Source: Octopus bimaculoides (taxonomy: Eukaryota). From it: a DNA stretch of 64,000 nucleotides. The notes beneath the pieces are model-generated. The model was not told where the DNA came from, made no database searches, and saw only the letters and a list, made by a program, of their open reading frames with translations. Below are positions 21,981 to 64,000 of the stretch, piece after piece. Position numbers and translations under genes: made by a program. The stretch's first letter is position 1, and every line of letters begins with the position of its first letter. The DNA lies in assembly GCF_001194135.2 (NCBI RefSeq), contig NC_068982.1, positions 114,708,026 through 114,772,025 of the forward strand. The letters are read 5' to 3'.

Positions 21981-22152
<172 letters not shown>

Positions 22153-26621: not shown

Positions 26622-27744
26622 GGTGGTGGTGGTGGTGNNNNNNNNNNNNNNNNNNNNNNNNNNNNNNNNNNNNNNNNNNNNNNNNNNNNNNNNNNNNNNN
26701 NNNNNNNNNNNNNNNNNNNNNNNNNNNNNNNNNNNNNNNNNNNNNNNNNNNNNNNNNNNNNNNNNNNNNNNNNNNNNNNNNNNNNNNNNNNNNNNNNNNN
26801 NNNNNNNNGAGGAGGAGGAGCAGCAGCAGCAGGAGGAGCAGGAGGAGCAGGAGGAGCAGGAGGAGCAGGAGGATGAGCTGTTTAACTACAGTTCATCTCT
26901 GAACTGGCTGAGCAGATATAAAAGCGTTCATACATATTGTGTCAGGATGCAAATTGGTGCAGACATAGTTAACATAGTTATATTGTTAAAAGTTCGTTTT
27001 GCAATCATGTAATTCTGGATTTTCACCCTACCACATGGTATCGTAGGCAAGTACCTTCTTCCAAAGCCTTGGGTTGACCCAGATTTTTTGTGAGAAATTG
27101 GACTGATGGAGACCGTGAGGAAACACTCCAAACTATTTCGCGTATTTGACTTAATCCGCCACTACATTTAAAACCAATATCTAACATTTAGGTATCTTTG
27201 ACGGAGTGGCTTTTGTATCAAACATTTGGTCTCCCGGTAATTCCTTAGTCGTGACTCCTTCTCCTTCTACTTCCCCAGTAGTGTAACTTAAGTGAAGCGG
27301 GGGCAGACCGTCCCAGACGACGCTTTTATAGGAGTGGCAGTTTCGGGTCTGCTGTATAAACAGTATAGGCTTGGGGATCCAGAGGCCAGCAAACACAAAG
27401 GCTGAACCGGGTGGCACATACTCTAGCTACGCCACTGCTATTCCCGAACGCCATAAGTGGGAGCCCTTCAAAATGAACGTGGGCATTGCTCTTTTACATC
27501 TGACTAAGCCAATACATTGTGTGTTCCCTTTTTAAGACGGCAGAGGGTTGTTTTAAGGTGATTTGGCTGCTATTTCTAGTAGGTTGTGTCCACTTAGAGA
27601 TTCCATTTATGGTTCGTCGACAACATAGTTTCGGTTGTCTATTGAAACTATTTCATTCCATCTACGCCATTGGTGCTGTTAAGAAAGCCTTGAACATCTA
27701 CCAATACCTTAAATATTCAAAGTTCCACGCCTATCTGGAGCAAT

Positions 27745-41400: not shown

Positions 41401-42379
41401 CCTCTGAGAGTGGTAAGAAAGGAGGAGGAAATTGTTCTCAAACTGGGGACCTGATCTGAATGCTAGCAACAGAGAGGACTCCATTAAAAGAAGCCCAAGG
41501 TACAAGGTGATAGTATTAATCTGGGCAATTAAGTCTAACACTCAAGGTGAAGTCTAACACTCAAGATTGTTGTTGTCGTTACTTTTGTCATTGCTGCTGG
41601 TAGTGTCTTTGTCATTGTTGTTGATTAACCCCATGACAACCGTGACTGAGTGGATGTATGATTGAAGACATTCCCATCATGATCATGAAATCTTTTTTGT
41701 ATATCAAACACTATATGGTCCAAAGTGCCCTTATCTGTGAAGACGAGTCCAATTCGAAGGTTACAACAAAAACAATTTCCTCATTGATTCAGTCAAATCA
41801 CTCAGAGATTCACAATATATGTATATTGCTACACTAGCACTGTAAATATACTTTGGAATATTGTCTTATTCCAAGTGGAATCCTTCAAGTATTTATGTTT
41901 TATTTTGGAACCTGCTTAATAAAGTTTAGTCACTCTTTCTTCAGAACAATTTTATATATTTTCATGAACACCAAGATAATTGTACACCCATGTATTTGTG
42001 AATGTTCATTTATATAAGTCTATAGATATGTAGAGAGGAGAAATAATGTAAAATTCCCCACATGGTACTCCAATAAATAAAGGTACATGTTTGAAAGGTA
42101 TCTCTAAATAAATATCAGTTCAAATACCATCCGTCAAGGAAAAGATTTTGTTGTGATATTCATGTACTGCCCATAGTTGTTAGAATTAGTGAAATAGTTC
42201 TATTTAAAGTCAAACGTTGATCAAAGACTGAGTAAACTCAGAACTTAGCACCTCCCCCTTCATACATAGAGAATTTATGAATATGAGAAAACATGCCAAG
42301 CTAAGTGAACTTGTAATAGCCTTTGCATACAGACATGTCCCCTGCATCTGTCTTCAGCTGAGTGATCCTAACCTTGTGG

Positions 42380-42610
42380 GATTGTGATTGCTGGTGCCAC
42401 ATAAAAAGCACCCATGGCAGTGCCATGTAAATGCACACATGCAAGTACTGTGTAAGAGCACCCAGACATTGTGTAAAAGAAGGGCATCCAGCTGTAAAAA
42501 CCATGCCAAAACAGACATGGAGCCCAGGCAGCTCTTCAGCTGGCCAACTCCTGTGAAACTGTCCAACCCATGCCAGCATGAAGAACAAAAGTTAGATGAT
42601 GATGATGATG
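42380..42610 (+). mobile_element. RTE 3'-tail / RTE-dependent SINE family C
   Basis: ...AAGGGCATCCAGCTGTAAAAACC...TGTCCAACCCATGCCAGCATG...(GAT)n tail. Same as the 3' end of the RTE at 60690-61100. Confidence 0.7.
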
Positions 42611-43214
42611 ATGATGAGGAGGAGGAGGAGGAGGAGGAGGAGGAAAATATATGTAGCCTATATAGTAAATACATAAATAGGGCAAATTTAATTATTTCTC
42701 TATATATTAAAAAAAATAATGATTTTTTTTAACCCATGATGAGGAATATTGAATGTAGAAAATGCATGAGAAAGAGTGAGTCCACTCCAAGACTGCCCAA
42801 GCTGACAGCAGCATGATAAATAGTGTGATTAAGGAAATGAAGGTAGGGAAAATAACTGGTCCATCAAGGATAGTTGTTGTAACATTCAAAATATAAAGAA
42901 AGATAGTTGAATTTGCCCTGTTCATACATCTAATACATAGGTTACACACACACACACACATAAATTCTTTACATGAAATACATCTTTATGCCACCCACCA
43001 AATAGGGCGGGGTTGACTTTTAAATGAGATTGACTTTTATTCTAGTATATATATAGTTAGTTGATGTGTGTGTATTTCTGCATGAAAGAGTACCCAATGA
43101 ACTTCTTGAGTTGTGTATTCAATATGCTATGTGCATTTTGTTAGGCATTTGATGAACACGTTTTGAGCAGTGACAGAGTAAATCATCAGCTTTGAATGAA
43201 CCATTTGAGCATGG

Positions 43215-43440
43215 TCGATGCCAGTACCACCTGACTGGCCCTCATGCCGGTGACACGTAAAAGCACCCACTACACTCTCGGAGTGGTTGGCATTAGGAAG
43301 GGCATCCAGCTGTAAAAATTTTGCCAGATCAGATTGGAGCCTGGTGCAGCCTTCTGGCTCGCCAGCCCCCAATCAAACCGTCCAACCCATGCCAGCATGG
43401 AAAGGGGACGTTAAAGGACGATGATGATGATGATGATGAT
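43215..43440 (+). mobile_element. RTE 3'-tail / family C
   Basis: CACGTAAAAGCACCCACTACACTCTCGGAGTGGTTGGCATTAGGAAGGGCATCCAGCTG...CCATGCCAGCATGG...(GAT)n. Confidence 0.75.
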
Positions 43441-46400
43441 ATATGCACGTACACACACACACACTTATATATACACACACTTACACACACATGAGTAATT
43501 GTGAAGTAAACTTCTTCATGCTGCATCCGCTTTATGCAGCACAGCCGTATGCTTAAGAAGTTTGCTTTGCAATCACAAGATCTCTAGTTCAAATCAAATG
43601 CAAAGGTTGACACAAGCCCCTTGTGACTATACAGAAGCCCATCAGATAGACAGTAGTTATCATTCAAAGATCTAGCCTTCTCATGCATTTTGTCATGCTG
43701 ATTCTGTCTGAGAATTATGTTAAGGATACACATCTGTGAAAGGTTCAGTCCTTACATGCTAATTCAGCAAACAGGAGATTCAGTTGATCCAACAATTGAA
43801 TACTTAGTGTCAAAACCAACAGAGAGCAATTTACTTATATATATATATATATACAAACATATAATGGGTTTTCACAGTTTCCACCTATTAGATTTCACTC
43901 TCAAAATTTTGGTCAACCTAAGATTATTAGAGAAGACACTTCCCCACTGTGCTATGTCATGTCATCAAATCTGGTACAATGTGGATGTGAAATGAACCCC
44001 TTATCTATACAATTTTCTTGGGTGAGCTGGGAATCAGAACCTTTGTTTCAAACATGATGTTTCAAGTTTTATAAGCACTACAAAATTATTATTGAGCAAT
44101 AAAAAGTTTCTGTTGCAAATTCAACAGAGGAAAAATGCATATAAACAGGTGTACAAAAGAAAATAATCAAAAGATAAGCATGAAAACATGAAATCAAATT
44201 AATACAATACTCCTTCCAAATTATCTTTGTATTTCATAACTATTTTCAGAAGTTTAATCATATCAGTACTTATTCAGTATTAAGAAATCTTGTATAAAAT
44301 TTAGAGAAAAAAAAACAATGATATTGAAAAAAAAAAGCGCTATGTTATTTTGACAAAAAAAAAAGTTACAAGAAAATATATATTAATTTTTTTCAGTCAT
44401 TGTTCCTCAGTATTCCTAGAATCACTATGTTAGTGTGGCATGCTGACTATAAAGAATAAATACAAGGGAAGTAACTGGCCAAAATGAAAGCTAAGTTCTA
44501 TGAGACAAGGGAAATAATGAGAGCAAACGCTATAACTATCAATATGAATATTTAAACACATTTTATGAATTCAGATAAGTGCAGTGAAAGTTTATTTTAA
44601 TGTATCACACAATACTCAGATATTTGAGTGCAGTAAACCATGAAAAACAAGGAAAAAATGTATGTGTGGATTCATTTCTCACATGTAGTAAATTAACAGG
44701 TAAGCAATGAATTAACAGATTTTTTAGTGCACTGAATGGAATGCCTTGCAGTATTTGTTTCAGCTCTCTGCTCTGTGGGTTCAACTTTGGCATTAATCCC
44801 AATCAGGATTTCAGTAAATAAATTACAGTTTAGGACAGTAGATTGGTAGAATATCAGAAAAGATAATTTGCAGTATCTCATCTGGCTGTTTGCATTTTGA
44901 ATTCAAATTCCACAGACAATGACAAGGACTAAATTACCTACCAAAAGGACCATAATAGATTATGAAAGCTGCATGAGGTTGAAGAGTGTTGTGATCATCT
45001 GCTACCACAGTCAACAATGATGATTCTCACATTCACACAGTATTATAAGCAATATATATATTTCCTAAGACATAAGGTCAATCTTTAAATGGGCAAGTAT
45101 AGGATTGTTCCAATTAACCATGTTATTAGTGTGTGAACCCAGAACAATGAAGCATTCTGTCTTGTTGGGATACACCAGCCATCTCCACAATATTTTGGTA
45201 TTGTTCACAAAGTGTGATGCAATAATATATAATTACTGAACCACTGCCATTTTTTTCCACGTCATAAAGGATATGAACAAAAACTAGACACAGGAAGAAA
45301 TAGCATTGTGATGTGGGGTGGCTGGTGAATGAAAACAAAACTGTTTAATTGTTCTGAGTTCAAATCTCATTAGGTATGGGATTACTTGTCGATTACTTGT
45401 TGACAGCTACAGGCCTGGCTATGTGGTTAAGAAATTCATTTTAGAATTATGTGATTTTGAATTCAGTCCCACTGTGAAGCACCTTGGGCAAGTGTCTTCT
45501 GCTGTAATCCTGGACCAACAAGGTCTTGTCATTGGATTTGGCAGACATGCACTGTGAGGACACCTGTAGTGTGTGTGTGTGTGTGTGTGTGTATATTTAT
45601 ATATATATATAAACTTAATATATATTATATGTAAACTTAATATTACTAAACGTTGAAAGGAGTACAGCTAAGTATTCTGATGTAGATTCATACATATCTC
45701 TTTTTTTTCCAGAATAAATTGAGTTATGATGGAGCAATGAATAAAATAAATCTATGTGCCACAAAAACATGAGTTATGAGGTCTCCAGCAAGGTTGGTGG
45801 GAGGTAAGAAGGAAGTAATCCTCAGACAAGAACCCGAGGATCAGGTGATGGTGTTAAATCAGGTGCTGGATTAAATCTACCACTCAACTGAGAAGCATGT
45901 TGGAAGTTTGCAGATGAAGAACCCCTCAATATTATTCACAGCCTTTCAACACTTTTCATCACATTGTACATGAACCCTGCACAAACTCATCTTCTCCTCT
46001 TGGTACATGAATCTTAACATATTTCATATTTTTAAGTGACACAGACTTTTAATCCTAATTCAACAAAGTCTGTGATATGGAATCAAAAACTTTACATTAC
46101 TCTTTTTTTTAGCTTCAATGCTGGCAACAGAGTGGATTCACTAAAAGGTACCTGTGAGGTAACTGATGATGTTTAACAAGGTTTCAGTTAGGTTTTTATC
46201 TTCAACCCAACATTTGGAATGGTTCCTCTGACAGATTTTCACAGTTTCCATTTATCTAATTTTTCTCACAAGGCTCTGCTTGACCAAAGGCTACAACTAA
46301 AAGACACATACATGCTCAAGACGCATACCCAGTATGTAATTTGTGAATTATGATTTAATCACACACCATGATAGGTACAAGCATAGTTACGTGGTAAGAA

Positions 46401-46849
46401 ATTTGCATAGTTTTCTTTCTTTTTTTTTTCTTTTAAAGAATCAGAAGGATACAAAGAGACTTTCATGTGATGTTCTTCAATGAGGTACACAGCTGTTTGG
46501 TACTGTATTCAAATCTGACAACAAAAACAAAGGGTTCTACTTCTACTTTATCATTGCATGAAGGACGTCCAGCAGTAAAGAACTACTACTTGAAAAAATA
46601 TCACTGCTATGCATAACATACCAGCTTCAAGAGATCTGAAAACCTGTCCCCAAATTCACTCCCTTACAGTTACATGAGCAAGCTGGCCTTAACAAAGAGT
46701 CTGAGGATGAGGTGGTTTCCTTGGTCTTGTTTCTTTAGTTAACTTGTAGTGACATACTAATGTTAAAAAAGGAGAAAAAATAATACAAAAGCACCCAAAG
46801 TTGGAAATACATTATCCAGATACTATAAATTAAAGTATATTATGCTGCA

Positions 46850-47235
46850 GGAATGGCTGTGTGGTAAGTAGCTTGCTTACCAATCACATGTTCCCAAGTT
46901 CAGTCCCACTGTGTGGCACCTTGGGCAAGTGTCTTCTACTATAACTTCAGGCTGACCAACGCCTTGTGAGTGGAATTGGTAGATGGAAACTGAAAGAAGC
47001 CCGTTGTATATGTATATATATATGTATGTGTGTGCATATGTTTGTGTGTTTGTGTTTATCCCCACAACATCACTTCACTACTGATGCTGGTGTGTTTACG
47101 TTCCTGTAATTTAGCAGTTTGACAAAAGAGCCTGGTAGAATAAATATTAGGCTTACAAAGAGTAAGTCCTGGGGTCGATTTGCTTGACTGCATGGCTGCA
47201 ATCAAATGACTAAAACAAGTAAAAGAATAAAAGAA
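46850..47235 (+). mobile_element. SINE family B, CpG-decayed
   Basis: Homologous to 27745-28150, with several CG replaced by TG/CA. Confidence 0.75.
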
Positions 47236-48166
47236 TATTGTTGAGCAGCAGGTCAGCTTGATTGATCAGACCTATGATCAAAGGTTTCCATCCAGGACCA
47301 TCAGGTATGTTTTTTTAAGACAGTGTATCTAGAAATGCATTATCCAATGTGTCCTTCCTTGGAGAGACAATAGGAAGGTGTATGATTTGATGCCAAAACA
47401 GACAATTGGAGCCTGGTGCTACTCACCAGCTGGCCAGCTCCTGTCAAACCGTCCAACCCATGCCAGCATGGAAAATAGATTTTAAATGATAATGATGATA
47501 ATGATGTATAATGACCTGTAGAGATATATTTGTACTGAGAAATAATAAATCTTTAATTTTACAAATTCATAGTTATGCAACTTGTATTAAATTACTGTTT
47601 TGAATCTTAAGGATTAAACTAGGTGAGGGTGTTAATGAGTTTCTATAGACTTCACATAACAGGTCCTTTAAATTTGAATGTTGACAGGATTTTGCTTTCA
47701 ATTAAGAGGCTCTCACATAGAAACTTGACATAGAAACTTGACATAGAAACTCCATTGTTGGTTCAAAGTAAATATTAATCAGACTATTAACTTCATTTTT
47801 TCAGGTGGTACCACAATATTTTTGACATGCACACTTCTTTCAATTCATATTTCATCCACACTCTTTCACATAATTCAAAGTCTCTTATTGAAAGTAAATG
47901 TCAAAGCATTAAATATAATATTAACCAAAAACCCCAATGAAAATACTCAAGCATAAATTTAAAACCTACTATGACTGCAATGTGATGATTCCTCAACACA
48001 AAATATAAAGTGTGGCACCTGAAGATGATCAGAAAATATGCCAACCAACAGGTAAACAAATACTGAAAAAATTGTTATGAATAGTCTGATTATGAATCTT
48101 TAAAATGTAGAAATATAAATTAAATTTAAAAAATGACATTAAGAAACACAGAAATGTGTAACAAAT

Positions 48167-48172
48167 TTTATT
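48167..48172 (-). promoter_or_regulatory. candidate SELENOF polyadenylation signal
   Basis: Minus-strand AATAAA followed by a T/GT-rich tract (TTTCTGTGTTTCTT), about 400 nt after the stop and downstream of the SECIS. Confidence 0.55.
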
Positions 48173-48755: not shown

Positions 48756-49557
48756 CTGAAATGACAAATGAAATGATTCAGTAATTTTGTTAAGAAAATT
48801 AAACCAGACTTCTGTAATTCATTAGTTCTTAAAGTAATTATAAGTTAATTCACACAGTTATTCATCCTCATAAAATATTGTAACATTGCTTTTTAAGAGA
48901 CTGAGTTACAAAATTATATAATAAATATATATATATATATATATATATANNNNNNNNNNNNNNNNNNNNNNNNNNNNNNNNNNNNNNNNNNNNNNNNNNN
49001 NNNNNNNNNNNNNNNNNNNNNNNNNNNNNNNNNNNNNNNNNNNNNNNNNNNNNNNNNNNNNNNNNNNNNNNNNNNNNNNNNNNNNNNNNNNNNNNNNNNN
49101 NNNNNNNNNNNNNNNNNNNNNNNNNNNNNNNNNNNNNNNNNNNNNNNNNNNNNNNNNNNNNNNNNNNNNNNNNNNNNNNNNNNNNNNNNNNNNNNNNNNN
49201 NNNNNNNNNNNNNATATATATATATATATACCTAATATGAAATCTACATAAAGATACCATTACTGTTCTTATAAATAAGTTTAATTAATCTATAAGCTTA
49301 AATATTTAACATCATCTTATAGAAGATTTTAACATAAACAACTTTATAGATTATTTAGATGATTTCTTATTTAAAGAGTCTGTAATTAAATATCTTCAAC
49401 ATGGATGGAGTAATACATTCCATTAATGGAAGTTTTTGGTGATAAAATCAAATAAACAGACTAAAATGTTAAGTGTAAACAGCCAGAGTAGCTAATGCAA
49501 CAACACTCTATAAAAAATTCCTCCAGAACAACAAGGAAATTCTTGAGTTTGACTTAC

Positions 49558-49621: not shown

Positions 49622-49876
49622 CTTTGAAATATAACAAAAACATAACAAAACTTTTAAGTAAAGATAATATCAAAAATATTTGATACAGGTTAAATTTATT
49701 TAATCAACAGCTATATACAGATTAAGTTCCAACAAAAATGGAGGCTTAAACATATCTAAGTGACATTTATGTTTTTTGATATCCATAATAAAAACCAAGC
49801 AAATATCAATGGATAACTTCTCTGCAACTAACAGAGTACTACATAAAAGTTGCTGTAACAGACTGAATAACATATT

Positions 49877-49931
<55 letters not shown>

Positions 49932-50906
49932 ATGCATCTCCATTACTACCATAGGCAGTAATGGAGATAAACACAGGTAAGCCTGATATAAATATATTTA
50001 CATGTAGCACAAAATAAATACAGAATAAGGTAAGGTAATATGTAATTTCATAACTCAACAGTTGTTTCAGGAAACCTAGATTTACATGATAATCATGATA
50101 ATCATAAATTGCAGATGAAATGCACAAAAAGTCATGGGTATGTAACCTGTAACTAGTCACATGAAGAAATTACAATAAGTCCAGTTCTCCTCATCAAGAG
50201 AAGATGTAACCCATGCCAGATGGAAAAGTGAACACAAATTGCTGCTGCTGCTGGTGGCCATCAATTTTGCATTGTATGCATGTATGTATAGACAGGCAGT
50301 CACATTCCTAGATATCACAGAATGAGTGGTATATTCTATAATCATCAATATCAAAGTTTTATATCCACTTTACCATCAGGCTCAAGTTGGGCAGTTTTAC
50401 TCAAGTAGTGTTTTAGAGTCAGATACCACTCTTGATGCAACCCTTTTCATCACTTCTTACAGTATATAGGAATGTGATATGTCTATTCTAAAACAAGCAT
50501 AACACACTGTAACTGAAAATTCTATAAAATTGAATTAATTGTTGATTATCTCAAAAAACTTATTGATTTGAGAAGCTACAGACAATGCTAGAGAACTCTA
50601 GCTCTGTATCATATATGTTTAATGCTGTCAGATACCAATACATGTCTGATGTTGAATACTTGTACACTTTGATGCTAAAAACTACTTTTAATGTTAGATA
50701 TTACATAACTATACATACATTTGATATTAAACATCTGAACACTTTGATGTTATTTAATAACTACCATTATCGTCATTGTTTCACATCTGTTTTCCATGCT
50801 GGCATGAGTTGGACTAACAATATTTGATGCTAAATACCTGTACACTGTATTTGAAGTTAGAAAAACCTTTACCCTTTCACGTTAAATACTAATATATATA
50901 CATATA

Positions 50907-52097
50907 CAGTGTGTCCCAAAAAATGTATACACACTTTATTCCTTTTCAGATTTACCCCATTTGAAATAATGATGGAAACTAAACTAAGCTTTGAACAAAG
51001 GAAATTTATCCAAAAGTGTTTCTGGAAGTTGAAAAACACAGTCCAAGTACAAAAATGGTTTAGGTGGGAATTTCAAACAGATCTGCCGAAGTAGCTTACC
51101 ACTAATTGAATTACAGATAGATTTGAAACAGATGGAACTATTTAGAATGTCCACAAGAAACATTCCAGAAGACCATGGATATTAATGAGCCTGACAAAGC
51201 AAGAAAGGGTACTAGAAACATACTGCCAGAGTTCAAGAAAATCTGTGTGGCAAGTGAGTTGTGAGATAGGAACTGTACCTTGAAATACAGTCATTGGAAA
51301 AGTGACATTCCAAGAATAATCTAAGATCTCAATGAAAATGGTCCAAATCAAAGACAGTTGTTTTGCAAGTTGTATTTGGCAAGATGTGTAGACGATGCAC
51401 ATTTTCCAACAAAGACTGTTTGGAGTGATGAGGCTACATACAAATTAAATGGCTTGATTAACTGCCACAGTTGTACCTATTGGGGACCCAAGGAACCACA
51501 TACTAAGGAGGAACATCATGTAAATTTACCAGTAGTTACATAATAGTGATGCTTATCATTAAAAGGATTAATTGGCCCATTCTTTTTGGTGGCACTGTGA
51601 CTGAATATCATGCCAAGTCTTCAAGAGGACTTAGAAGATGTGGAGTTTTATTTTGAATAAGACAGGATACACCAACACTACAATTGTAATGTAAGGGCTT
51701 ATCGTGATGAGGCTTTGCTAAACAGGTGGATCAGACAAAGCAATTCAGATGAATACCCGCCACAGTTGCCAGACCTCACATCACTAGACTTTTTTCTATG
51801 GGGATACTTAGATGATAAAATTTATTGTACAAAACTAGCAACACTCAATGAACTGAAGACAGCCACTGAATGAGAATGCACATAAATACCAAACAAAATG
51901 TTTCTTGATATTTGCAATTCCATTGTTTCATGTTACCAGCAGTGCCTGGACCAGAATGGACATCACTTTGAAAACAGGTGATCATAAAAAAAAAATTCTG
52001 TTTGTAGATTCTATTAAATTTTGAAACTGAACTCTATTTTAATAAGCACTGACTTTTATATCATTCTATGTGTATACATTTTTGAGGGGATACCCTG
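50907..52097 (+). mobile_element. defective IS630-Tc1-mariner element, DD41D (rosa-like)
   Basis: TA flanks (50905-06, 52098-99). TIRs CAGTGTGTCCCAAAAAATGTATACACA / CAGGGTATCCCCTCAAAAATGTATACACA. Motifs [12 protein letters not shown] and PDLTSLDFFLWGYL. 41 codons lie between the Asp at 51661 and the Asp at 51787. Stops and frameshifts elsewhere. Confidence 0.85.
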
Positions 52098-53239
52098 TAT
52101 ATATAATGATGATGATGATATTTGATGTTAAATACTTGTACACTTTTAAGTTATTAAATGGTATTTTTTTAATGTCAAATGTGAAATCATTATGTAACTA
52201 CAAATATTGATGTTATTAGATAAGTACACATGTTTGATGTTATGATGATCAGATCCCAAATGGAGTCTTTATCGATGGGAGAAGTGAATATCTAACAGAA
52301 GCAGTTGATAGTCAACTAAAATTTCAAAGATTGACTACATCCACCAGCAAAACCGCAATACAAAACAGTATATAAAATATAAGTAAAAAATATTTGTTCA
52401 TATACTGTATAGTCTCTAAGTTGAAATCCCATCAGACTTAGTTTTGTGTTTCACTCTACTAGAGATGATATGTAGCAGTAGCATAAAGAGGTTGATTCAA
52501 ATAACAATAAATACTTCATTCAACAATTCATCTTAACTTAAGGAAGAAATTAATATGTGTAAATTTTACTTTATCTTATATATTAATTACATGCAAAAGC
52601 AAAACATTTAATCATTATATGAAATCTTAGGGAACAGTGTACTATTTTGGGAATAATAGTTTGGCCACATTTGTCATGTTGGATTTTACAACTGATATTA
52701 TCATCATCACAATTTTATATGTGCTTTTTTATGCTGGCATGAATTTGGGGTTTTCCTGCGGCACAGTTTTACAGCTAGATGCACTTCTTGTTGCCCACCC
52801 TTACAATATGCATGGACACTGTGTACCTATTCTAAAACCACAGTAAGCTATTACTAAACAGAGTAATAAAAACTCAAATACAATAAGTCCTTTACAAAAG
52901 AATACATTAGTTTGCATCTATTAGTTCAGAAGATAATTCTAGGTCTAAACTAGGATGACCTACATTTCATTGATACAGATACAAACAAAAATGTGAACAG
53001 TTAGAATATCTTCTGCAGTGTGTCAGTCAGTACATCATCACATTAAACACCAAAATAGTTTCTGAATTTCCAGACTACAAGTTGTGATATCTCAAGCATC
53101 CTGGTATCTATTTTAACTAATGTTAGGTTAAACTTGGTAGCTTGTAAAACTTCCAGAATGGTTCATGTAAGAAAAAGTGAGTAAATATACAGTTAGAGTC
53201 TTTTCTTCAATTATTTAGGAATATTTCTCAAATTGAGAA

Positions 53240-53371
53240 TTTCCAAAAATTGCACCTAACCTGTACCCTCCGGGTACAGTGGTGCGCTCAATTATTAATT
53301 GCAGGTGTCAGCAGTCTTGCCCTCAGTAAACCCTCCTTGAGCAAGCTCCCAACCCCCTGACGAGGACGGTT
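53240..53371 (-). ncRNA. RNU4ATAC: U4atac minor-spliceosomal snRNA
   Basis: 5' AACCGTCCTCGTCAGGGGG (human AACCATCCTTTTCTTGGGG). K-turn stem-loop CTTGCTC-AAG-GA-GG-GTTTA-CT-GA-GGGCAAG. TGAGGGCAAGACTGCTGACACCTG (human TGAGGGCAGTACTGCTAACGCCTG). 3' stem-loop GCACC/CTGTACCC-GGA-GGGTACAG/GGTGC. Sm site AATTTTTGG (human GGTGCAATTTTTGGAAA). About 132 nt; the exact 3' end is uncertain. Confidence 0.9.
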
Positions 53372-54682
53372 AACTATATTTTGTCGTATTCTAATATATA
53401 CACTGAGCAAAATGTACATTTGTAGGTATTGACTAACGGAGTAGTCATCGCCATTAATGTACAGCGAAATATTGCGCTTAACAAATTATATCAACTTAAT
53501 TTAAAGAACATAATTAATCATTTTCGTAGATGTAACGTTTTGAATTAAACTGAAAAATAATTATTTAAGACTTTTTTCTGAAAGTTTACTTAAAAATATT
53601 ATTATTACTTCCCTTGACACGACACTTCCGCTTAATATGGGTTTCCTCCCTTAGCTTAGAATTTCTAAGAAATATTTATTCCACGTATTAATTTTCCACG
53701 TATTAATTTTCTCTCTCTCTCTCCGTCTCTCTCCACACACACATTCCTTCACACTTATTCTATCCCGCCCTTCTCGTTAACTGCCTGCTAAAATCATATA
53801 AATATTTATCGAGATGTTATATGAATGTACGTCACTCGGAAATTTGGCTGCGGCATTACGTGTTGTATATTCATACCCACCACCGCGATTCATTACATAT
53901 CTTAGTCAAATCACTTAATTCTACATGCCTTACTAATAAACTTAGTTGTTGTTGTTTAGTCCCATGTCAGCTCTGATCAAAAGGCATTAGAGCCGTGACA
54001 ACCACATTATGTTTTTTCACCTCCGTCGGACAAAATGTATTGCAATATTTGTTCTAGTTCAATACGTTCCGAGATCAACTTCATCCTTATGGAGGCCGGG
54101 GCAATAAAATAGAGTACCAGTTAAGTACTTGAGCTGAAGGTATTGATTAACCCGTCGTTTCAAAATTGATGGCCCGGTGCCTAAAATAGAAACATTGAAG
54201 ACGGTAGGGGGTGATCTAAGGGTTATCTGTCTGCTTTTTCTAGCAAATAGATAGAGCAGTTTTGAAATGACTTTTTTTATTTGATTTTTTATTTTTTTAT
54301 TTACTTATTTTGATTTTCCTGATTTTCATACAAATATAAATCATGGTTCTGGAAAAAAATTTAGTTAATGTTTACTTTAACTACCGGTCACCAAAACAAA
54401 CAAAAAAAACGAGTGTAATAGGTGTAAAAAAAAATGTGTATTAAACGAATGTGAAAACAAAAATTTGCGCCAACGAACGGGGGGGGGCGGAGAAAGGATT
54501 TTCGGAAAATTCGCAAGATCCGATTTTTCCCCTCATAACTTTTAGGAAAATGGATATCTTCTAGTGAAATTTTAAATAAATACCTTTCAAACGGCATAGA
54601 TTACGATTATAAAGAACGGGATGCTACAAATCAATATGACATATAATTTAAATTTTAATATATGTTCACGACATAATTTTCG

Positions 54683-54700
<18 letters not shown>
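53372..54700. promoter_or_regulatory. CpG-retaining region upstream of U4atac (candidate promoter)
   Basis: CpGs are frequent here but sparse in the flanks (by eye). CACTTCCG (ETS-like) at 53623-30, CCCGCCC at 53764-70, TACGTCA at 53828-34, and ATGGCG about 80 nt upstream of the snRNA start. Confidence 0.45.
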
Positions 54701-54723
<23 letters not shown>

Positions 54724-54827
54724 GAAGAAGAATGGAACGAACGAAACTGTTTATAATAAATATCATGCATGCTCTCATTGATATGCTAATTTTAGTACAT
54801 GCTTTTTGTGTGTTTGCACATATATAT

Positions 54828-55540
54828 NNNNNNNNNNNNNNNNNNNNNNNNNNNNNNNNNNNNNNNNNNNNNNNNNNNNNNNNNNNNNNNNNNNNNNNNN
54901 NNNNNNNNNNNNNNNNNNNNNNNNNNNNNNNNNNNNNNNNNNNNNNNNNNNNNNNNNNNNNNNNNNNNNNNNNNNNNNNNNNNNNNNNNNNNNNNNNNNN
55001 NNNNNNNNNNNNNNNNNNNNNNNNNNNNNNNNNNNNNNNNNNNNNNNNNNNNNNNNNNNNNNNNNNNNNNNNNNNNNNNNNNNNNNNNNNNNNNNNNNNN
55101 NNNNNNNNNNNNNNNNNNNNNNNNNNNNNNNNNNNNNNNNNNNNNNNNNNNNNNNNNNNNNNNNNNNNNNNNNNNNNNNNNNNNNNNNNNNNNNNNNNNN
55201 NNNNNNNNNNNNNNNNNNNNNNNNNNNNNNNNNNNNNNNNNNNNNNNNNNNNNNNNNNNNNNNNNNNNNNNNNNNNNNNNNNNNNNNNNNNNNNNNNNNN
55301 NNNNNNNNNNNNNNNNNNNNNNNNNNNNNNNNNNNNNNNNNNNNNNNNNNNNNNNNNNNNNNNNNNNNNNNNNNNNNNNNNNNNNNNNNNNNNNNNNNNN
55401 NNNNNNNNNNNNNNNNNNNNNNNNNNNNNNNNNNNNNNNNNNNNNNNNNNNNNNNNNNNNNNNNNNNNNNNNNNNNNNNNNNNNNNNNNNNNNNNNNNNN
55501 NNNNNNNNNNNNNNNNNNNNNNNNNNNNNNNNNNNNNNNN
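54828..55540. other. assembly gap (713 N)
   Basis: Direct reading. One possible hiding place for the missing 5' SELENOF exons. Confidence 0.99.
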
Positions 55541-55848
55541 GCCTGTGTTAGAATGGGGGCAGCTGATGAAGGAAAATGTTCTCTATGTGGCCTGTGTGTT
55601 TTCTGTACTCTGGTTATTATTATTTTTTTTGTCTACGTTTTGTTTGCAATGTCCTGTACCCAGATATGCACCTATATATACAGGTAGATGTAGGTATGCA
55701 CATACTTGTACGTATATATGCATATACTCATTTATATTTGTTTTATATATATATATAGACAGAGAGAGAGAGATTTGCATTATGAAAATGCTACCACTCC
55801 TTAAAAATCTGGCCTTATAATAAATGAAAATAAATTAATACTCTATAA

Positions 55849-56209
55849 CAGTGGTTCTCAACCATATCTTACCTGTAGAACCCTTTGATTACGGTTTTAC
55901 TCAGGTAGACCCCCTACAGCCAATTAATGTTTAAAAACTAATTTTATAGACACTTCTTTCAAAATTCCTATTTTGTTTACCACATGTTCACTTGTGCAGG
56001 TTTGCAATAGCACTCTCCAAGGGAACATGTTGAACTTTGTGGAGCGTTAAAAAAAGAAACCTAATTGTTTTGCTTTTTTTTATGGGGGGGGTGTAATAAA
56101 TACGTGTAAGGCAAAATTTTTTTCTTTGATCCCTAAAATACAACTGCAAACCCCCAAAAAATATTATATGAACCCTCAGGGCTTATATGGTGCCTTGTTA
56201 AGACCACAG
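55849..56209. mobile_element. hAT-type MITE
   Basis: Starts CAGTGGTTCTCAACC and ends ...GTTAAGACCACAG. 8-bp TSD CTCTATAA (55841-48) / CTCTATAC (56210-17). Confidence 0.75.
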
Positions 56210-56877
56210 CTCTATACAGTAATTACACTCTGAGTTCAAATCCTGCTAGGATCAACTTTTCCTTTCATTCTTCTAGGGTACAAATAAGCATAAATCAAGT
56301 ACTATGATCAATTCAATCAACTTTTCCCTTGCCTCTTAATTTGCAGCCTCAACATGATAAAGAGCTACAGAATAACTGCTTATAGTATCTGCAGAGAACT
56401 AGTTTAGTAATCAGACTAGTAAAAAATGACAGCTGCATCAAAAATTTAGCTAAGGGAGCACTCTAAATAGTTGCTCATCCTTGTAAAAATAACAGCCATT
56501 CTCTTCAAATCCCACCTTACTGTGTTAAAAAAAATGAAAGGGCATACTGCACAATATAGTTCTACATATAAAAAGACAGGAAGGTCATGGATGAAATGCC
56601 TTGGATAACAGATCTACTCAATGATCAGGAGTTGGTACAGAAAATTTTAACTCTAAACCCTCTATTTGTAATTAAGCTTATATTTCTTATTAACTGAGAG
56701 CATACAACATACATGGCCAATCTGAATCATCAGGGAATTTTTTAGCAGCATGATATATTTGAGTTGGGGTTTAAATGCTGCATAGCTTGTCACTAAATTT
56801 TTCTGTAATATTTATTGAAGTTACAAACAATTACATGGAAAAATGCAAGCATGAAAAGTCATATTCTTAAGATTATA

Positions 56878-57298
56878 AACATGGAAAAGGACAGGACAAG
56901 TTATTACACCTGTAAAAGTATAGGACAAGCTATTACTTCTAGTAAAGTAAAGATTAAGAAACTTTTTACTTAAAATATCGCAGCAAAGAATGCCAGTTCT
57001 AATTTATCACTCTTTACAGCTCTCATCATTAAAATTTATTGTACAAAACTGTTCAGCTAATTTCTAAGTTTGTCTAATTAGTCACTTTTTTCTGTATTTA
57101 AGGTAGTAAATTAACCAAATTCTACTTGAATAAGTATAGTGTTATTTGTAAACTATAATAAAATAAATTTTAATATTCAAATTTTAATTTTAGCTGCAAT
57201 ATTTTAAGTAAAAGTTTCTTATTCTTTACTTTACTTGAAGTAATAGCTTGTCCTATACTTTTACAGGTGTAATAACTTGACCTGTACTTTTCCAGGTT
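56878..57298. mobile_element. TA-flanked MITE with about 107-bp inverted arms
   Basis: AACATGGAAAAGGACAGGACAAGTTATTACACCTGTAAAAGTATAGGACAAGCTATTACTTC... (56878-56984) is the reverse complement of 57193-57298. TA at 56876-77 and 57299-300. Confidence 0.75.
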
Positions 57299-59800
57299 TA
57301 CATGGCTTGCACAGCTCTCACTAACCATTCATCTATCCCTAGTTTCCTCATTGACCACCAGATAAGGGATTGGGGGACCCTGTCAAAGGCTTTTTCCATA
57401 TCAACGAAAGCCAGATACAGAGGTTTATCCTTGGCTAGGTATTTCTCCTGCAGTTGTCTTACCAGAAATATAGCATCAGTGGTGCTTTTCCCTGGCACGA
57501 ACCCAAACTGCATCTCATCTAAACTGATTCGTTCCCTAATTAGTTGAGCTATGACCCTCTCCGTGACTTTCATTACCTGATCCAACAACTTGATACCTCT
57601 GTAATTATTTGTATCTAAAGCGTCACCTTTACCTTTGTAGCAGTTGACAATGGTGCTGCTACACCAGTCATTGGGTATGACTCCTTCATGTATCACCTGG
57701 TTAACTATACGGGTGACTAGGCTATAGCCAATAGACAGATATTTTGAGCATCTCTGCAGTGATTCCTGATGGGCCGGAGGCTTTCTCTGTCTTCATACTC
57801 TTGATTGCTTTATCTACCAAGGTACTGTCAATTCGGATAGCTGGTCCCTCTGTTGGGTCGACATTCGGCAGACTCTTTCTCCCATTCATTCTCTTTATTG
57901 AGCAACCTTTCATAGTAATGTCTCCAAACCTCTCTCTCTCTCTTTGCAGCCTTGTTTAGTGCAAGTGAACCATCATCCATGCAGACACATTTCTCTCCAA
58001 CATCACGATTCCCTCTCACACACTGTCTTGCAACACAAAATACTCAAGTCTTTGGTCCTCACAGCACAGAACATTGGCAAATTTTTTCTTATCTGCTTCC
58101 CCTCTAGCTGAATAAACCTGTCTCCTAGCTTCCCTTCTGGCAGTCTGATACAATTCCCTGCTACCACCGTTCTTCCAATCCTTCCAAGCCTGTTTCTTTT
58201 GTCAAATAGCCCTATCAACAACAATGTTCCACCACCACATTATTTTGGGTCGAGAGGGGACTTTGCATCATCCACAGAGCTGCTCAGTGGCCCTCAGCAG
58301 GTTGTCCTGTAGAAACATCTAATTTTCTTCCACATCGTGTGAAGTTATATCCCCTTCTATTTCATCAAAGGCTTCGAGTAATACATCTCTAAATCTCTGT
58401 CCATTCGCAGGATCTTTAAGCTTCCAGACCCTTCTCCTCCATGCTGGTCCTCTTCTGGGCATCCATTTAGCCCTGATCCTGACATTGCTAACTACCAGTC
58501 TATGTTGTGGGATACATTTTTCGCCTGGGAAGGTTTTGGCATTTATAAGTAGCCGTTTTCCCCTTTTTCTGGTGAGGATGTAGTCAATTTGGCTAAGTGT
58601 GTCTGCCAGAACAGTAGGTGACTAGGTGACTGGCAGGTTTCCTGAAGTTAGTATTGCAAACCATAAGATCATTTGCATCGCAGAACTCCAGCAGCCTGGT
58701 AGCCTCCATGTACACCATGGAAGCCCCCTGTATGTTATCCAACATGTCCAATGAAGTCACCAGCCACAAAGAGGAGGTCCCTGTCATTCGTCAACGAGGT
58801 AGTCTGCAAGAGGGTGTCATAAAATCGGTCCTTCTGTCCATCAGGTAGCCCCGGCTGAGGGGAACAGGCCGAGATAATGTTTGCTAACCCATGATGAAGC
58901 ACTAATCTAATCTTAAGTACTCTGTCACATACTCTGACTACCTCGATTACCTTATCAACTCATTTCTCAGCATGAAGTATACGCACGTCCCTGACTCCGT
59001 CAGTGTTCTTTGCCCAGAAAATCTTGTACCTGTGTTTTTTGCCTGTGAGGAACCTAGCAGAACCTCCTCTCCACCTTACTTCTAGGATGCAGCACAAATC
59101 GACACATCTCCGTTCAAGCATCTCAAAAATCTCACCAGACCTACTTTTCAGTGTGCCGACGTTGAGAGTACCAACCCTGAGGGTGTAGGAGGTATGGGCC
59201 TATGAGACCCTGGGACAGGGGACAGCAGCATCATGTACCTGAATAGAAAGCTCACATTTGGCAGAATTCATAAACAAACAATAGCCTTCATTTCAACCTG
59301 CATACACTACACCATCATATCTATGCACTATATGATCACTACCTTACATAGGAGATAAACCCTAAGTAGGGGTGGGGATGGCATAAAGGCTTTAGAAGTG
59401 TGCATGGGAGACAACCAAAGAATGACACAGGATAGGAACTTCCAGTACAGGTGGAGGGGGTCAGAGGGTCGGTGGGCGGGCGTACTATGAACTAACAAAT
59501 TTAGACGGGAGCATCTTCTGGATACGTATTCTTTCGGCGGAGGTATTAAAAATCGAGTAGGGGAATCCAAGTGCATGCACTAGTTTATATAGGATAGGGG
59601 TGGGGGAAGTCTTGGCGAAGCAAGTGGTAATCGAAAGAGAGACAGATAGACAGACAGAGTGAGGCCGAGAGAGAGAGAGACAGACAGAGTGAGGCCGAGA
59701 GACAGTGAGGCAAAGAGAGAGAGGGGGTACCAGAGTTAGGGTGGTCAGAACACGAGGGAGAAAAATATTCTTTTGGGATTTGGGTAGCATAATTTAAAGA
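57299..59800 (-). mobile_element. RTE-clade LINE, 5' part (5' region, APE endonuclease, start of RT), defective
   Basis: TLRVGTLNVGTL (EN start, ~59170); ...CNTNFRKPASHLVTY; NYRGIKLLDQVMKVTERV...FGFVPGKSTTDAIF...AFVDMEKAFDRVP. Contains frameshifts. The 5' boundary is approximate. Confidence 0.85.
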
Positions 59801-60559
59801 AACAGCAAATGTCAATAATAGTAAAATAGAATTGAAAAAAAAGTTTTCAGTCAGCCAATCTATAACAAAATTTGAGAAATAAGTGACTGTGTGATAAACT
59901 TGAATGAATGAATATGTGGTGGTTAAGGATATGATGAACTAAGGTTATCTTCAGGCAACAACAAGGATGACGAAACTATATTTACATATTTACATGGTAA
60001 TGAAATAGAAGAGTAGATGAACAAGGTTGAAAAGACAAAATTTCTTATCTGAGCATCTTCTGAGATTCGTATCCTTTCACATATATATATATGTATATAC
60101 ATACATATATATATAATATACATACATATATATATATATATATANNNNNNNNNNNNNNNNNNNNNNNNNNNNNNNNNNNNNNNNNNNNNNNNNNNNNNNN
60201 NNNNNNNNNNNNNNNNNNNNNNNNNNNNNNNNNNNNNNNNNNNNGGAAATGTATAACTGCTGTCATTCACAGAAAAACTATTGTTTTACTGTGAAAAAAG
60301 TGCTGTTGAAGTGTTAAGTGAAATTTATCGATCAAGGATCAAATCCACAGTATGCCTGCATGAAACCACAACAAATACATTGTGGAATAAAAAATTTATC
60401 TACTATCATGGAAAAAGTGTAACTGTAAAAATGCAGAATTATTGGAGTAATAGGCATTCAAAAAAGTATGTATGTATAGAAATGTATAAATGAAATCTTT
60501 AAGGTTTAAGATTCAAATTAAGGAAGTGCAATAATAATAATACAGTTCTATATTTAAGA

Positions 60560-60680
60560 GATGAGGAATTATGTACATTATTTACAAGTGACGGATATTT
60601 GTCCTCATCTTGTTTGTTGTTAACACAACGTTTCGGCTGATATACCCTCCAGCCTTCATCAGGTGTCTTGGGAAATTTTG
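60560..60680 (-). mobile_element. Penelope-like terminal repeat relic with hammerhead-like core
   Basis: Minus strand CTGATGA-A-GGCTG-GAGGGTATAT-CAGCC-GAAAC at 60662-60630. Confidence 0.4.
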
Positions 60681-60689
60681 CACCAGGCT

Positions 60690-63300
60690 CCAATCTGAGC
60701 TGGCAATATTTCTACAGCTGGATGTTCTTCCTAACGCCAATCACTAAGAGTGTAGTGGGTGCTTTTTACGTGTCAGTGGCACAGAAGCCAGTCAAGGGGT
60801 ACTGGCATTGGCCACATTCGGATGGTGCTTTTTGCATACCACTGGCACAGGGGCCAATCAGGCGGTCTTGACATCAATCCTGTTCAGATAATGGTATTTA
60901 TGTGCCACCGGCACGGGAGCCAGTCAGGGGATACTGGCCACAGCTATGATATTGGTTTTATTTGACTCAACAGGTCTTCTCAAGCGTATCATATCACCCG
61001 ACACATCGTGTACACTTAACTGGGCCAGATAAACATGGCTGCAATCTCACTTTAGTTGCCGAGTCTTCTCAAGCTCAGCATATCTCCAAAGTTCTCGGTC
61101 TCCGGTCATTTCCTCTGTGAGGCCCAATGTTCAAAGGTCATGCTTCAACACCTCATCCCATGTCTTCCTGGGTCTACCTCTTCGATAGGTTCCTTCCACA
61201 GTTAGGGAGTGGCACTTCCTCACACAGCTGTCCTCATCCGTGCGTAACACACGACCATACCAGCGCAGTTGTCTCTTGCACACCACATTTGATGCTTCTT
61301 GTGCCCAACTTTTCTCTCAGGGCACTTACACTCTGTCGTGTATGCACACTGACATTGCACATCCAGCAGAGCATATTAGCTTCATTTCTTTCAAGCCCAT
61401 GCATGTCTTCAGCAGTCATGGCCCATTTTTTACTGACATGTAGCATGACTGTTTGCATGCAGGCATCATACAGTCTACCTTTCATCCTGAGCAAGAGGCC
61501 CTTAGTTGCCAGCAGACATAAAAGCTCCCTGAACTTTGCCCAGACTATTCTTATTCTAGCCGCTACACTCTCAGAGCAACCACCCCCACTACAAACTTGG
61601 TCGCCTAGGTCGTGGAAGCTATTAATTACTTCCAGTTTCTCCACCAAGCATATAATGGAATCTGTTTTCTGTACAACTTCAGTGTTTATTGCCCCTGTGC
61701 ATCTGTTACACACAAAAACTATCTTCCCATTTAACCTTCCTTTGATATTGCTGCACCTTTTATTTGTCCATAGCTTACACCGAGTACACCGTATGGAGTT
61801 TCTACCCACGCCTTTTCTACAGATCGAACAGAGCCATCTACCTGAAGGGGTTTGTGATTTGACAGCCTTCCTACTTACTAAGACTTTGGTTTTTGCTAGG
61901 TTAACCCTAAGGCCCTTCACTTCTAGACCTTGCTTCCACACCCTAAACTTCGTCTCTAGTTCTGGCAATGACTCAGCTATTAGAGTAAGGTCATCAGTAT
62001 AGAGAAGCTCCCAGGGGCAGCCTGTCTTGAATTCCTGTTATTGCCTAGAAGACTATGATGAATAAGAGTGGGGATGACTATACTCATTACCAACCCTCAC
62101 CTTACTGACAACATCCCTCTATCTCTAGTTTCTGCATTGACCACCAGATAAGGGATCAGGGGACTCTGTCAAAGGCTTTCTCCAAGTCAACAAAAGCCAA
62201 ATACAGAGGTTTATCTTTTGCTAATTGTCTTACCAGAAATACAGCATCAGTGGTGCTTCTGCTTTGCACAAAACTAAACTGCATCTCATCTAGGCTAAGT
62301 CTCTCCCTAATTAGTTGGGCTATGACTCTGTAACTGTCATCACTTGATCCAATAATTTGATACCCCTGTAGTTATTGCTATCTAAAGCATCGCGTTTACC
62401 CTCATAGCAGTTGATTATGGTGCTGCTACACCAGTCATTGGGTATCACTCCTTCATGAACTACCTGATTTACAACATGACCATAACCCACACCACCCAAT
62501 ATTTTAAGCATCTCAGCGGCGACTTCTGATGAGCCAGGTGCTTTCTCTGTCTTCATATCCTTAATTGCTTTATCTACCAGGGTACTGTCGATTTGGATAG
62601 CTGGTCCCTCAACTGGGTCAACATTTGGCAGACTCTCCTCCTCCCATTCATTCTCTATATTCAGCAGTCTTTCATATAATGGCATCTCCAAGCCTCTTTC
62701 TTTGCAGAATCATTAAACGCAAGGGCACCATCATCCATGCAGACACACTTCTCTCCTATAACATCACAGTTTTCTCTCAAACACTGTCTTGCAATCCGAA
62801 ATACTTCAGTTCTTTAGTCATCACATCGCTAGACATTGGCAAACTTCTTTTCTGCTTCTCCCTTAGCTATGTATACCTGTCGCCCAGCCTCCCTTCTGGC
62901 TACCTGGTACAGTTCCCTGCTACCCCCACTCTTCCAGGCTTTCCAGGTGCCTAGTCCCCTCTTCATTTCTGGTACCAATTTCATGGCCCCCATGTACACC
63001 ATGGGAGATATCAGGTTGCTGTCCAACATGCCCATTAAAATCTCCAGCTACAAAGATAAGATCATTGTCACTCGTCTTTGAGGTAGCCTGCAGAAGAATA
63101 TCATAAAAGTGATCCTTCTGTTCATTTGGTAGGCCCGCTTGTTGGGTGTAGGCAGAGATAATTGTAGTAATATCATTCTGCAAGACCAGCCTGAGTTTAA
63201 GTACTCTATTGCACACCCTCACTACCTCTATGACCTTATCCACCCATTTCTCTGCAAGAAGTATGCCCACACCCCCTATTCCATCACTATTACCTTCCCT
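60690..63300 (-). mobile_element. RTE-clade LINE, internally deleted (EN part, RT pieces, PHD-like finger, C-terminus, 3' UTR)
   Basis: GVGILLAEKWVDKV...AGDFNGHVG; NYRGIKLLDQV; LLYTDDLTL; KGLRVNLAKTKV...CSIC...CTRC...CNRC; ARIRIVWAKFRELL. The 3' UTR equals family C. Confidence 0.85.
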
Positions 63301-63611
63301 GTACATATATATATATATATATATATATTTATTACTTATATATATGCATCTTAAAACAATTCATTGAGAGCTGTACCAAGTCAGCTATCATAAAATCTCC
63401 ATATCAACCAATAAGAGGGAAATTTTAGGTAAAACACTATAAAATAAATTACTCAATGAACACTGAGAAATTCCTGAGGTAGATCCAGCGACAAATGTGT
63501 AAATACTGTGGATGACATCAGGTAGTCATAGGCAGTGAACGTGTTTCATCAGCTAACTACTAGGAACATACTCAATACTTAAATAATTATTTATCTATTT
63601 TACATATATAT

Positions 63612-64000
63612 GGGTTCGTGCCAGGTAAAAGCACCACTGATGCCATATTTCTGGTGAGACAGCTGCAGGAGAAATATCTAGCCACGGATAAACCTCTGTA
63701 CCTGGCCTTCGTTGACATGGAGAAAGCCTTTGACAGGGTCCCCCGATCCCTTATCTGGTGGTCAATGAGGAAACTTGGGATAGAAGAATGGTTAGTGAGA
63801 GCTGTGCGAGCCATGTACAGAGATGCTGTCAGTAAGGTGAAGGTTGGAAATGAGTACCGTAATGAATTCCGGGTAGAGGTAGGGGTCCACCAAGGTTCCG
63901 TCCTCAGCCCCCTCCTATTTATCATAGTCCTCCAGGCGATCACAGAGGAATTCAAGACAGGTTGCCCCTGGGAGCTCCTCTATGCTGATGACCTTGCACT
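63612..64000 (+). mobile_element. RTE-clade LINE, RT domain, uninterrupted to the window edge (5'-truncated)
   Basis: GFVPGKSTTDAIFLVRQLQEKY...AFVDMEKAFDRVP...GVHQGSVLSPLLF...ELLYADDLA with no stops. Opposite orientation to the two neighbouring RTE copies. Confidence 0.9.

Follow-up and report, generated by a model that had tools for sequence, protein, structure and literature searches.

A U4atac small nuclear RNA gene in sense orientation within a long intron of the octopus selenoprotein F gene

A 64,000-nucleotide stretch of the Octopus bimaculoides genome (assembly GCF_001194135.2, contig NC_068982.1, forward-strand positions 114,708,026 to 114,772,025; hereafter the window, numbered from its first letter) contains a gene for the U4atac small nuclear RNA (snRNA) and, about 3.6 kb downstream of it on the same strand, the end of a gene for selenoprotein F (SELENOF, Sep15). 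An earlier note, made from the letters of the window, had proposed that U4atac is nested in the same orientation in an intron of SELENOF, and the gap-free locus of Octopus vulgaris bears this out: there U4atac lies in intron 2 of SELENOF on the host strand, and the window is collinear with that locus. We consider it very probable that the window holds a full-length, sense-strand U4atac gene in the SELENOF intron between the exon for the Cys-rich, UGGT-binding domain and the selenocysteine (Sec) exon, that it acts as an autonomous snRNA-type RNA polymerase II (Pol II) unit, that SELENOF exons 1 and 2 lie beyond position 64000 and that the host gene is little affected. The nesting is conserved in at least two Octopus species.

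The host is a real SELENOF gene on the minus strand of the window. Tblastn and direct reading placed the Sec exon at 49621-49558 (minus), where it reads MYPYAELIVCG-TGA-KLGRYPQVQ with the TGA in frame, and direct reading showed an AG acceptor at 49623-49622 and a gtaagt donor. The last coding exon, located in the same way at 48755-48577 (minus), includes the stop codon and ends in HERLMK-TAA. The joined peptide of both exons matched the Pfam family Sep15_SelM (PF08806, E = 1.2e-27), and the Sec exon carries the CxU motif of the Sep15/SelM redox domain with its in-frame TGA (CG-TGA-K). In the 3' untranslated region, a candidate selenocysteine insertion sequence (SECIS; RF00031) lies at 48415-48351 (minus); its AUGA and GA core is intact, and at 32.6 bits it falls just short of the gathering score, 35 (search space 1.35 kb, E = 3e-4). 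An AATAAA polyadenylation signal is found downstream of it at 48172. The exons in the window are uninterrupted by assembly gaps, so that the reading frame is unaffected. Compared with O. vulgaris, the two exons differ at only 7 of 243 nt and every change is synonymous; purifying selection acts on the coding sequence in the two species.

A scan of the full window against Rfam returned U4atac as the sole match above threshold, a minus-strand gene of 132 nt at 53239-53370 (RF00618; score 83.3 bits, gathering score 53). The match is full length (model positions 1-132 of 132), and the 5' stem-loop with its kink-turn, the Sm site AAUUUUUGG and the 3' terminal stem-loop were all aligned to the RF00618 consensus with high posterior probability. 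Both stem-loops were also recovered by folding the single sequence (-46.2 kcal/mol, z = -2.4). A literature search on octopus U4atac turned up only a paper on a squid genome, where U4atac is listed as present.

The two window exons encode the C-terminal part of SELENOF. The earlier note had seen no signal-peptide or Cys-rich exon, and wider searches agreed with it. In the sequenced window, no credible N-terminal exon was found with a regular expression for CxxC...CxxCC in six frames, with tblastn using ten N-termini (human and nine invertebrate ones, from molluscs and crustaceans) or with a profile hidden Markov model of the Cys-rich domain run against every stop-to-stop frame of a six-frame translation, and tblastn with the O. 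vulgaris SELENOF N-terminus gave neither a signal-peptide nor a Cys-rich exon. This includes the interval 49622-53220 between the Sec exon and U4atac, where exons 1 and 2 would have contradicted the proposed nesting. Two short matches were rejected as chance: ECKTCCEEN at 25964-25990, which lies on the plus strand and thus the wrong one (E = 0.036), and a match of 21 amino acids at 44047-43955, downstream of SELENOF. The lack of an N-terminal domain is a limit of the window and not of the gene.

A first protein search with the C-terminal half of SELENOF as query gave no cephalopod among its matches. When the N-terminal halves of homologues were aligned under a probe terminating in the window's KMYPYAELIVCG, the resulting profile retrieved, among other matches, P0156, a protein of 97 amino acids named ‘Hypothetical predicted protein [Octopus vulgaris]’ and labeled ‘Selenoprotein F’ in UniRef. 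Its C-terminus, ...EGEKALKMYPYAELIVCG, is identical to the window Sec exon up to the TGA and carries KMYPYAELIVCG at its end. When P0156 was used to search for further cephalopod SELENOF proteins, it was itself the sole match in the database. The public O. vulgaris model ends at the TGA Sec codon, which gives the 97-residue product and leaves the C-terminal redox domain unannotated; for O. bimaculoides, neither protein search that used window sequence returned a protein from the SELENOF exons of the window. Two Logan transcript contigs, L007 and L008 (closest C-terminal match P0004), were tried as a source of the N-terminus and rejected, as they are non-coding upstream of the Sec exon. In these mollusc transcripts (L007 1-534, L008 1-502) SELENOF is spliced from the Sec exon to the last exon, and about 500 nt of non-coding sequence stand before the Sec exon in place of a Cys-rich exon; this part could be a retained intron or point to an internal start site.

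The O. vulgaris locus (here L009; GCA_951406725.2, OX597815.1:16622517-16658774) spans 36,258 bp of a chromosome-level assembly and has zero Ns. All four SELENOF exons are on its plus strand: exon 1 at 10001-10084, the Cys-rich exon 2 at 15263-15436, the Sec exon 3 at 26223-26286 and exon 4 at 27225-27403. The introns of 5178, 10,786 and 938 bp all have GT-AG borders, and the exons join in a continuous frame to a selenoprotein of 166 amino acids with U at position 98, in which exons 1 and 2 supply the signal peptide and the Cys-rich (CxxC...CxxCC) UGGT-binding domain. The U4atac orthologue, found with Rfam (83.8 bits with RF00618), lies at L009 23858-23989 on the plus strand, which is the host strand, within the intron of 10,786 bp. 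It follows the Cys-rich exon by 8.4 kb and precedes the Sec exon by 2.2 kb, so that, as read from the genomic sequence with its canonical splice sites, host exons flank it on both sides (exon 2 upstream, exon 3 downstream).

The reverse complement of the window aligned with L009 in one collinear chain of about 90-95% identity, with one block of 82% within the CpG island described below. The chain runs from window 57201 (L009 19456) down to 42295 (L009 36258), through U4atac and both SELENOF exons; within it, window 57201-49622 corresponds to L009 19456-26222. Intron identity between the species is 93-95%, which, with the synonymous differences in the two coding exons, marks them as close yet distinct members of Octopus. 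This bears on the possibility, named in the earlier note, that a scaffold misjoin brought U4atac and the Sec exon together. The scaffold does contain eleven gaps and many microsatellites, but in the independent chromosome-level assembly of the sister species, U4atac is followed by the Sec exon and then the last exon, all oriented as in the window. Between U4atac and the Sec exon, collinearity is interrupted once, at a segment of 2.35 kb (window 52054-49702) around a mariner-like transposon remnant at 50897-52105 (plus), which has terminal inverted repeats of 37 nt and decayed transposase-like open reading frames. This segment is missing from O. vulgaris, where one terminal repeat is left at L009 26090-26127. 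The break is a transposon-bearing indel with a terminal repeat in both species, not a misjoin, and because O. vulgaris retains that repeat, a deletion in its lineage is likelier than an insertion in the window. With this collinear locus at hand, a misjoin as the cause of the adjacency is hardly credible.

The earlier note had placed the missing exons either in the assembly gaps 54828-55540 or 60145-60244 or beyond 64000. Exons in a gap would shorten the intron to about 5-10 kb and make the CpG island the promoter of SELENOF. The island does adjoin gap 54828-55540, it has a size that suits a housekeeping promoter, and the gap lengths are merely estimates. The flanks of this gap, however, keep order and orientation in O. 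vulgaris (55712 corresponds to L009 21454 and 54645 to L009 22191), and its counterpart there, L009 21455-22190 (736 bp), gave no match to SELENOF and consists of AT-rich sequence with (TC)n/(TA)n microsatellites; gap 54828-55540 in the host intron thus hides no exon. Furthermore, O. vulgaris exons 2 and 1 are found 8.4 and 13.8 kb upstream of U4atac, and exon 1 has a CpG-rich region of its own; with the exons so placed, we rejected the idea that exon 1 sits in the gap next to the island and has the island as its promoter. The second gap, 60145-60244, is surrounded by non-orthologous copies of long and short interspersed elements (LINEs and SINEs) and has no counterpart in L009. Finally, L009 14720-18200, which holds exon 2 with its unique flanks (>3 kb), had zero match in the window. 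We therefore regard exons in the gaps as very unlikely.

Since the chain is collinear and the window has no match to L009 14720-18200, SELENOF exons 1 and 2 must lie beyond 64000, the other place that the earlier note had allowed for. The host intron, from the Cys-rich exon outside the window to the Sec exon, therefore measures at least 14.4 kb, of which 49622-64000 (minus) is visible; the previous figure of more than 5 kb was correct in direction and too low. Between the collinear part and exons 1 and 2 lies a LINE/SINE cluster at 57299-64000, with a reverse transcriptase match (RVT_1, E = 2.9e-12) and endonuclease-like open reading frames. Its matches to L009 are scattered and of 67-78% identity, and its elements are therefore paralogous copies. 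The gap in the last SELENOF intron, 48950-49213, is flanked by collinear sequence as well (49274 corresponds to L009 26570, 48935 to L009 27042).

The U4atac genes of the two species differ at 6 of 132 positions (nt 62, 79, 82, 84, 89 and 112), an overall identity of 95.5%. Nucleotides 1-61, which comprise the 5' stem-loop and, as read from the sequence, the predicted U6atac-pairing regions, are unchanged, and so is the Sm site. Five of the six substitutions are at unpaired positions and the sixth turns a C-G into a U-G, which keeps the pair. In the 3' flank at 53212-53238 (minus), 27 of 27 nt are the same in both species, including an A-rich motif, TCTCAATTTGAGAAATATTCCTAAATA, that resembles a 3' box. 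These patterns are relevant for the question whether this copy is a non-functional intronic pseudogene, with the working gene elsewhere. snRNA families give rise to many pseudogenes, and the identity between the species is barely above neutral. The copy is nevertheless full length, exceeds the Rfam threshold by 30 bits and shows neither truncation nor a poly(A) tail; the distribution of the substitutions, together with a CpG island and an invariant 3' flank kept in both species, also speaks against decay. A pseudogene is therefore unlikely.

U4atac sits at the edge of a CpG-replete island, presumably unmethylated, that begins at its 3' end and extends upstream into the gap (53240-54827). The observed/expected CpG ratio is 0.8-2.6 in the island and 0-0.2 on either side of it. 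There are 0 CpGs in 52760-53270 and 52 in 53271-54742, and the sequence is CpG-poor again past gap 54828-55540; the earlier note had described this return to CpG-poor sequence after 55.5 kb, and the counts agree with it and show a sharper boundary. O. vulgaris has an orthologous island of about 2.1 kb (L009 ~21850-23960), and the island edge coincides with the U4atac 3' end in both species. The CpGs common to both species amount to 34 per 1434 aligned bp in the island and 16 per 7085 aligned bp in the flanks, ten-fold denser per kb in the island. In animals with gene-body methylation, such a pattern would be expected of DNA that is kept unmethylated, as at an active promoter, and it fits an autonomous snRNA promoter at U4atac. 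The O. vulgaris sequence has more CpGs than the window, but this excess is due to lineage-specific insertions and a (CAT)n array, and aligned blocks are similar in CpG content; it was therefore dismissed.

Two rearrangements were noted at the O. vulgaris island. An insertion of about 390 bp that is free of CpG (L009 23127-23514) splits it upstream of U4atac in this species only, and directly downstream of U4atac, L009 24339-24492 is an inverted copy, 83% identical, of island sequence that matches window 54288-54442.

The proximal upstream region of U4atac, 53371-53500 (minus), reads as a presumed snRNA-type promoter. Direct reading gave a TATA-like sequence, GTATATATTA, at about -32 to -23 (53402-53393) and a candidate block for the proximal sequence element (PSE) at about -72 to -45. 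In autonomous snRNA-type Pol II genes, a PSE is expected near -55 and a 3' box 9-19 nt beyond the 3' end of the RNA. Footprinting from two species at about 94% identity has no power to single out such elements, and their assignment, like that of the 3' box in the flank 53212-53238, is putative. A run of five T in an Sm site would terminate RNA polymerase III, and Sm-class snRNAs require a cap. Since the U4atac Sm site contains such a run, transcription by Pol II from an snRNA-type promoter is expected. A sense position in an intron of a housekeeping gene is also classically seen in small RNAs encoded by introns (PMC6619189), and U4atac could in principle lack a promoter and be excised from the SELENOF intron as intronic small nucleolar RNAs (snoRNAs) are. 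Against this, Sm-class snRNAs are capped primary transcripts from their own promoters in every studied system (PMC6619189), and U4atac here is preceded by a TATA-like box (about -30) and marks the end of a CpG island. No box C/D, H/ACA or other family of the snoRNA or small Cajal body-specific RNA (scaRNA) type matched the U4atac region in Rfam, even at E <= 1. Processing from the host intron seems highly improbable.

Another question is whether the nested unit affects SELENOF, by transcriptional interference or Integrator-mediated attenuation, both raised in the earlier note, or by the island acting as an internal promoter for a transcript whose first ATG would be codon 1 of the Sec exon. U4atac and SELENOF share one strand, the island, conserved between the two species, is longer than a minimal snRNA promoter needs to be, and the Sec exon opens with an ATG in phase 0. 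However, the Met of the Sec exon is not conserved (other molluscs have K, I or L there), and purifying selection maintains the SELENOF coding sequence in both species. A passage in PMC4526738 that cites Hernandez and Weiner (1986) states that snRNA 3'-end formation falls sharply if an mRNA-type promoter replaces the snRNA-type one. As 3'-end formation needs the snRNA-type promoter, host polymerases should ignore the 3' box of U4atac and pass it, which argues against strong attenuation of SELENOF; promoter occlusion or collision at U4atac may occur. An effect on the host thus appears distinctly unlikely. In a more specific form, the conserved 2-kb island would be an intragenic control point of SELENOF, either by attenuation at the sense snRNA unit or by a short transcript from the Sec-exon ATG, and to this we give a somewhat smaller chance again. 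If it were true, the short transcript would encode the redox domain without signal peptide or UGGT-binding domain, and the control point would couple the output of an endoplasmic reticulum selenoprotein to the transcription of a minor-spliceosome snRNA.

We propose instead that U4atac is most likely a separate snRNA-type Pol II unit, with its proximal promoter directly upstream and its 3' box directly downstream. The island of about 2 kb around it would be spared the loss of CpG seen in the host gene body, while host polymerases would pass through U4atac, its sequence leaving with the spliced intron. The arrangement would then be a by-product of snRNA gene mobility and of intron expansion driven by transposons in the octopus lineage, with little or no consequence for SELENOF. 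Some points weigh against this proposal. Exons 1 and 2 are outside the window, and nesting in the window rests on the collinearity with O. vulgaris; this U4atac copy need not be the functional one; upstream of the gene, positions -13 to -130 match O. vulgaris at 95.8%, a level not above that of the neighboring neutral intron; and an island of 2 kb is longer than snRNA promoters typically are and might contain some other feature.

Further observations concern the repeats and the surroundings of the locus. The LINE/SINE cluster 57299-64000 contains at least three decayed LINEs (two minus, one plus), in which endonuclease and RVT_1 parts and a PHD-like C-terminus are recognizable, and LINE copies of about 70-78% identity are present in SELENOF intron 1 of O. 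vulgaris (L009 11.0-14.7 kb). A SINE-like repeat of about 240 bp, which resembles the abundant octopus SINE, occurs at window 43200-43444, 60679-60924, 47407-47507 and 42479-42620 and at eight or more sites in L009 (75-88% identity), and it is the source of most extra CpGs in the O. vulgaris introns. L009 35098-35955 is a (CAT)n-type microsatellite of 286 units with 85% matches and many CpG variants, which is missing at the orthologous window site (~43.2-42.6 kb). The window gaps at 1360, 6270, 10485, 16722, 25304, 48950, 54828 and 60145 have, where inspected, microsatellites such as (TA)n or (CA)n at their borders, and gaps at simple repeats are typical of short-read scaffolds. Beyond the SELENOF polyadenylation signal at 48172, CpG depletion continues for about 7 kb (41000-48150, observed/expected 0.06-0.3). 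The O. vulgaris annotation has no further gene within 10 kb at the equivalent region; 41000-48150 may be a long stretch of read-through or contain a transcribed gene that lacks annotation.

For annotation, these results settle the structure of octopus SELENOF, whose public model is split at the TGA and whose 5' half is outside the window, and they give U4atac a place in the octopus genome and clear gap 54828-55540 of a hidden exon. They also provide a clean case, in two species, of a sense snRNA gene in a gene body of the methylated type with a sharply bounded CpG island. For an invertebrate that methylates its gene bodies, the locus could offer a natural setting in which to test how snRNA units get along with transcription of the host gene. 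Current understanding, that nested snRNA genes are frequent and that snRNA 3'-end processing depends on the promoter, is not challenged.

Within molluscs, U4atac was not found within 10 kb on either side of six other SELENOF loci (Pinctada, Batillaria, Tegillarca, Sinanodonta and two ENA contigs). The nesting is therefore not ancestral to molluscs and arose after those lineages split. The SELENOF genes of Pinctada, Batillaria, Tegillarca and Sinanodonta share the octopus domain order of signal peptide, Cys-rich domain and CxU redox domain, the C-terminal part of octopus SELENOF is 55-70% identical to that of other molluscs, and a SECIS was detected at the Tegillarca locus. These four genes, however, span 0.5-2.2 kb without an snRNA gene, whereas the octopus gene exceeds 17 kb and has transposon-filled introns.

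Nested snRNA genes are known from other animals. Introns harbor 47 of the 120 snRNA genes of Caenorhabditis elegans and some minor snRNAs of Drosophila, and such arrangements turn over quickly between lineages while the host remains unchanged (PMC3342880). Octopus U4atac resembles these in being an apparently independently transcribed gene in a host intron, and differs from them as a single cephalopod instance whose conserved CpG island stands out in a gene body depleted of CpG. With intron-encoded snoRNAs and scaRNAs it shares the features of a structured small RNA on the sense strand of a housekeeping-gene intron; those RNAs, though, are promoterless and trimmed from the spliced intron, whereas octopus U4atac is an Sm-class snRNA with promoter-like sequence and its own CpG island (PMC6619189). 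Many human snRNA genes are located in introns of protein-coding genes (PMC13484765). Human RNU4ATAC, like octopus U4atac, is a separate gene wholly within such an intron, namely intron 2 of CLASP1 (PMC12703291, PMC13484765). The earlier note had named this host correctly; RNU4ATAC, however, is antisense to CLASP1, whereas octopus U4atac is on the same strand as SELENOF (PMC12703291). The suggestion of an independent nesting in the earlier note is supported by the missing U4atac at the six non-cephalopod loci, so that the octopus nesting appears to be independent in origin from that in CLASP1. The octopus case is a new instance of a known arrangement that differs from the human one in host and orientation.

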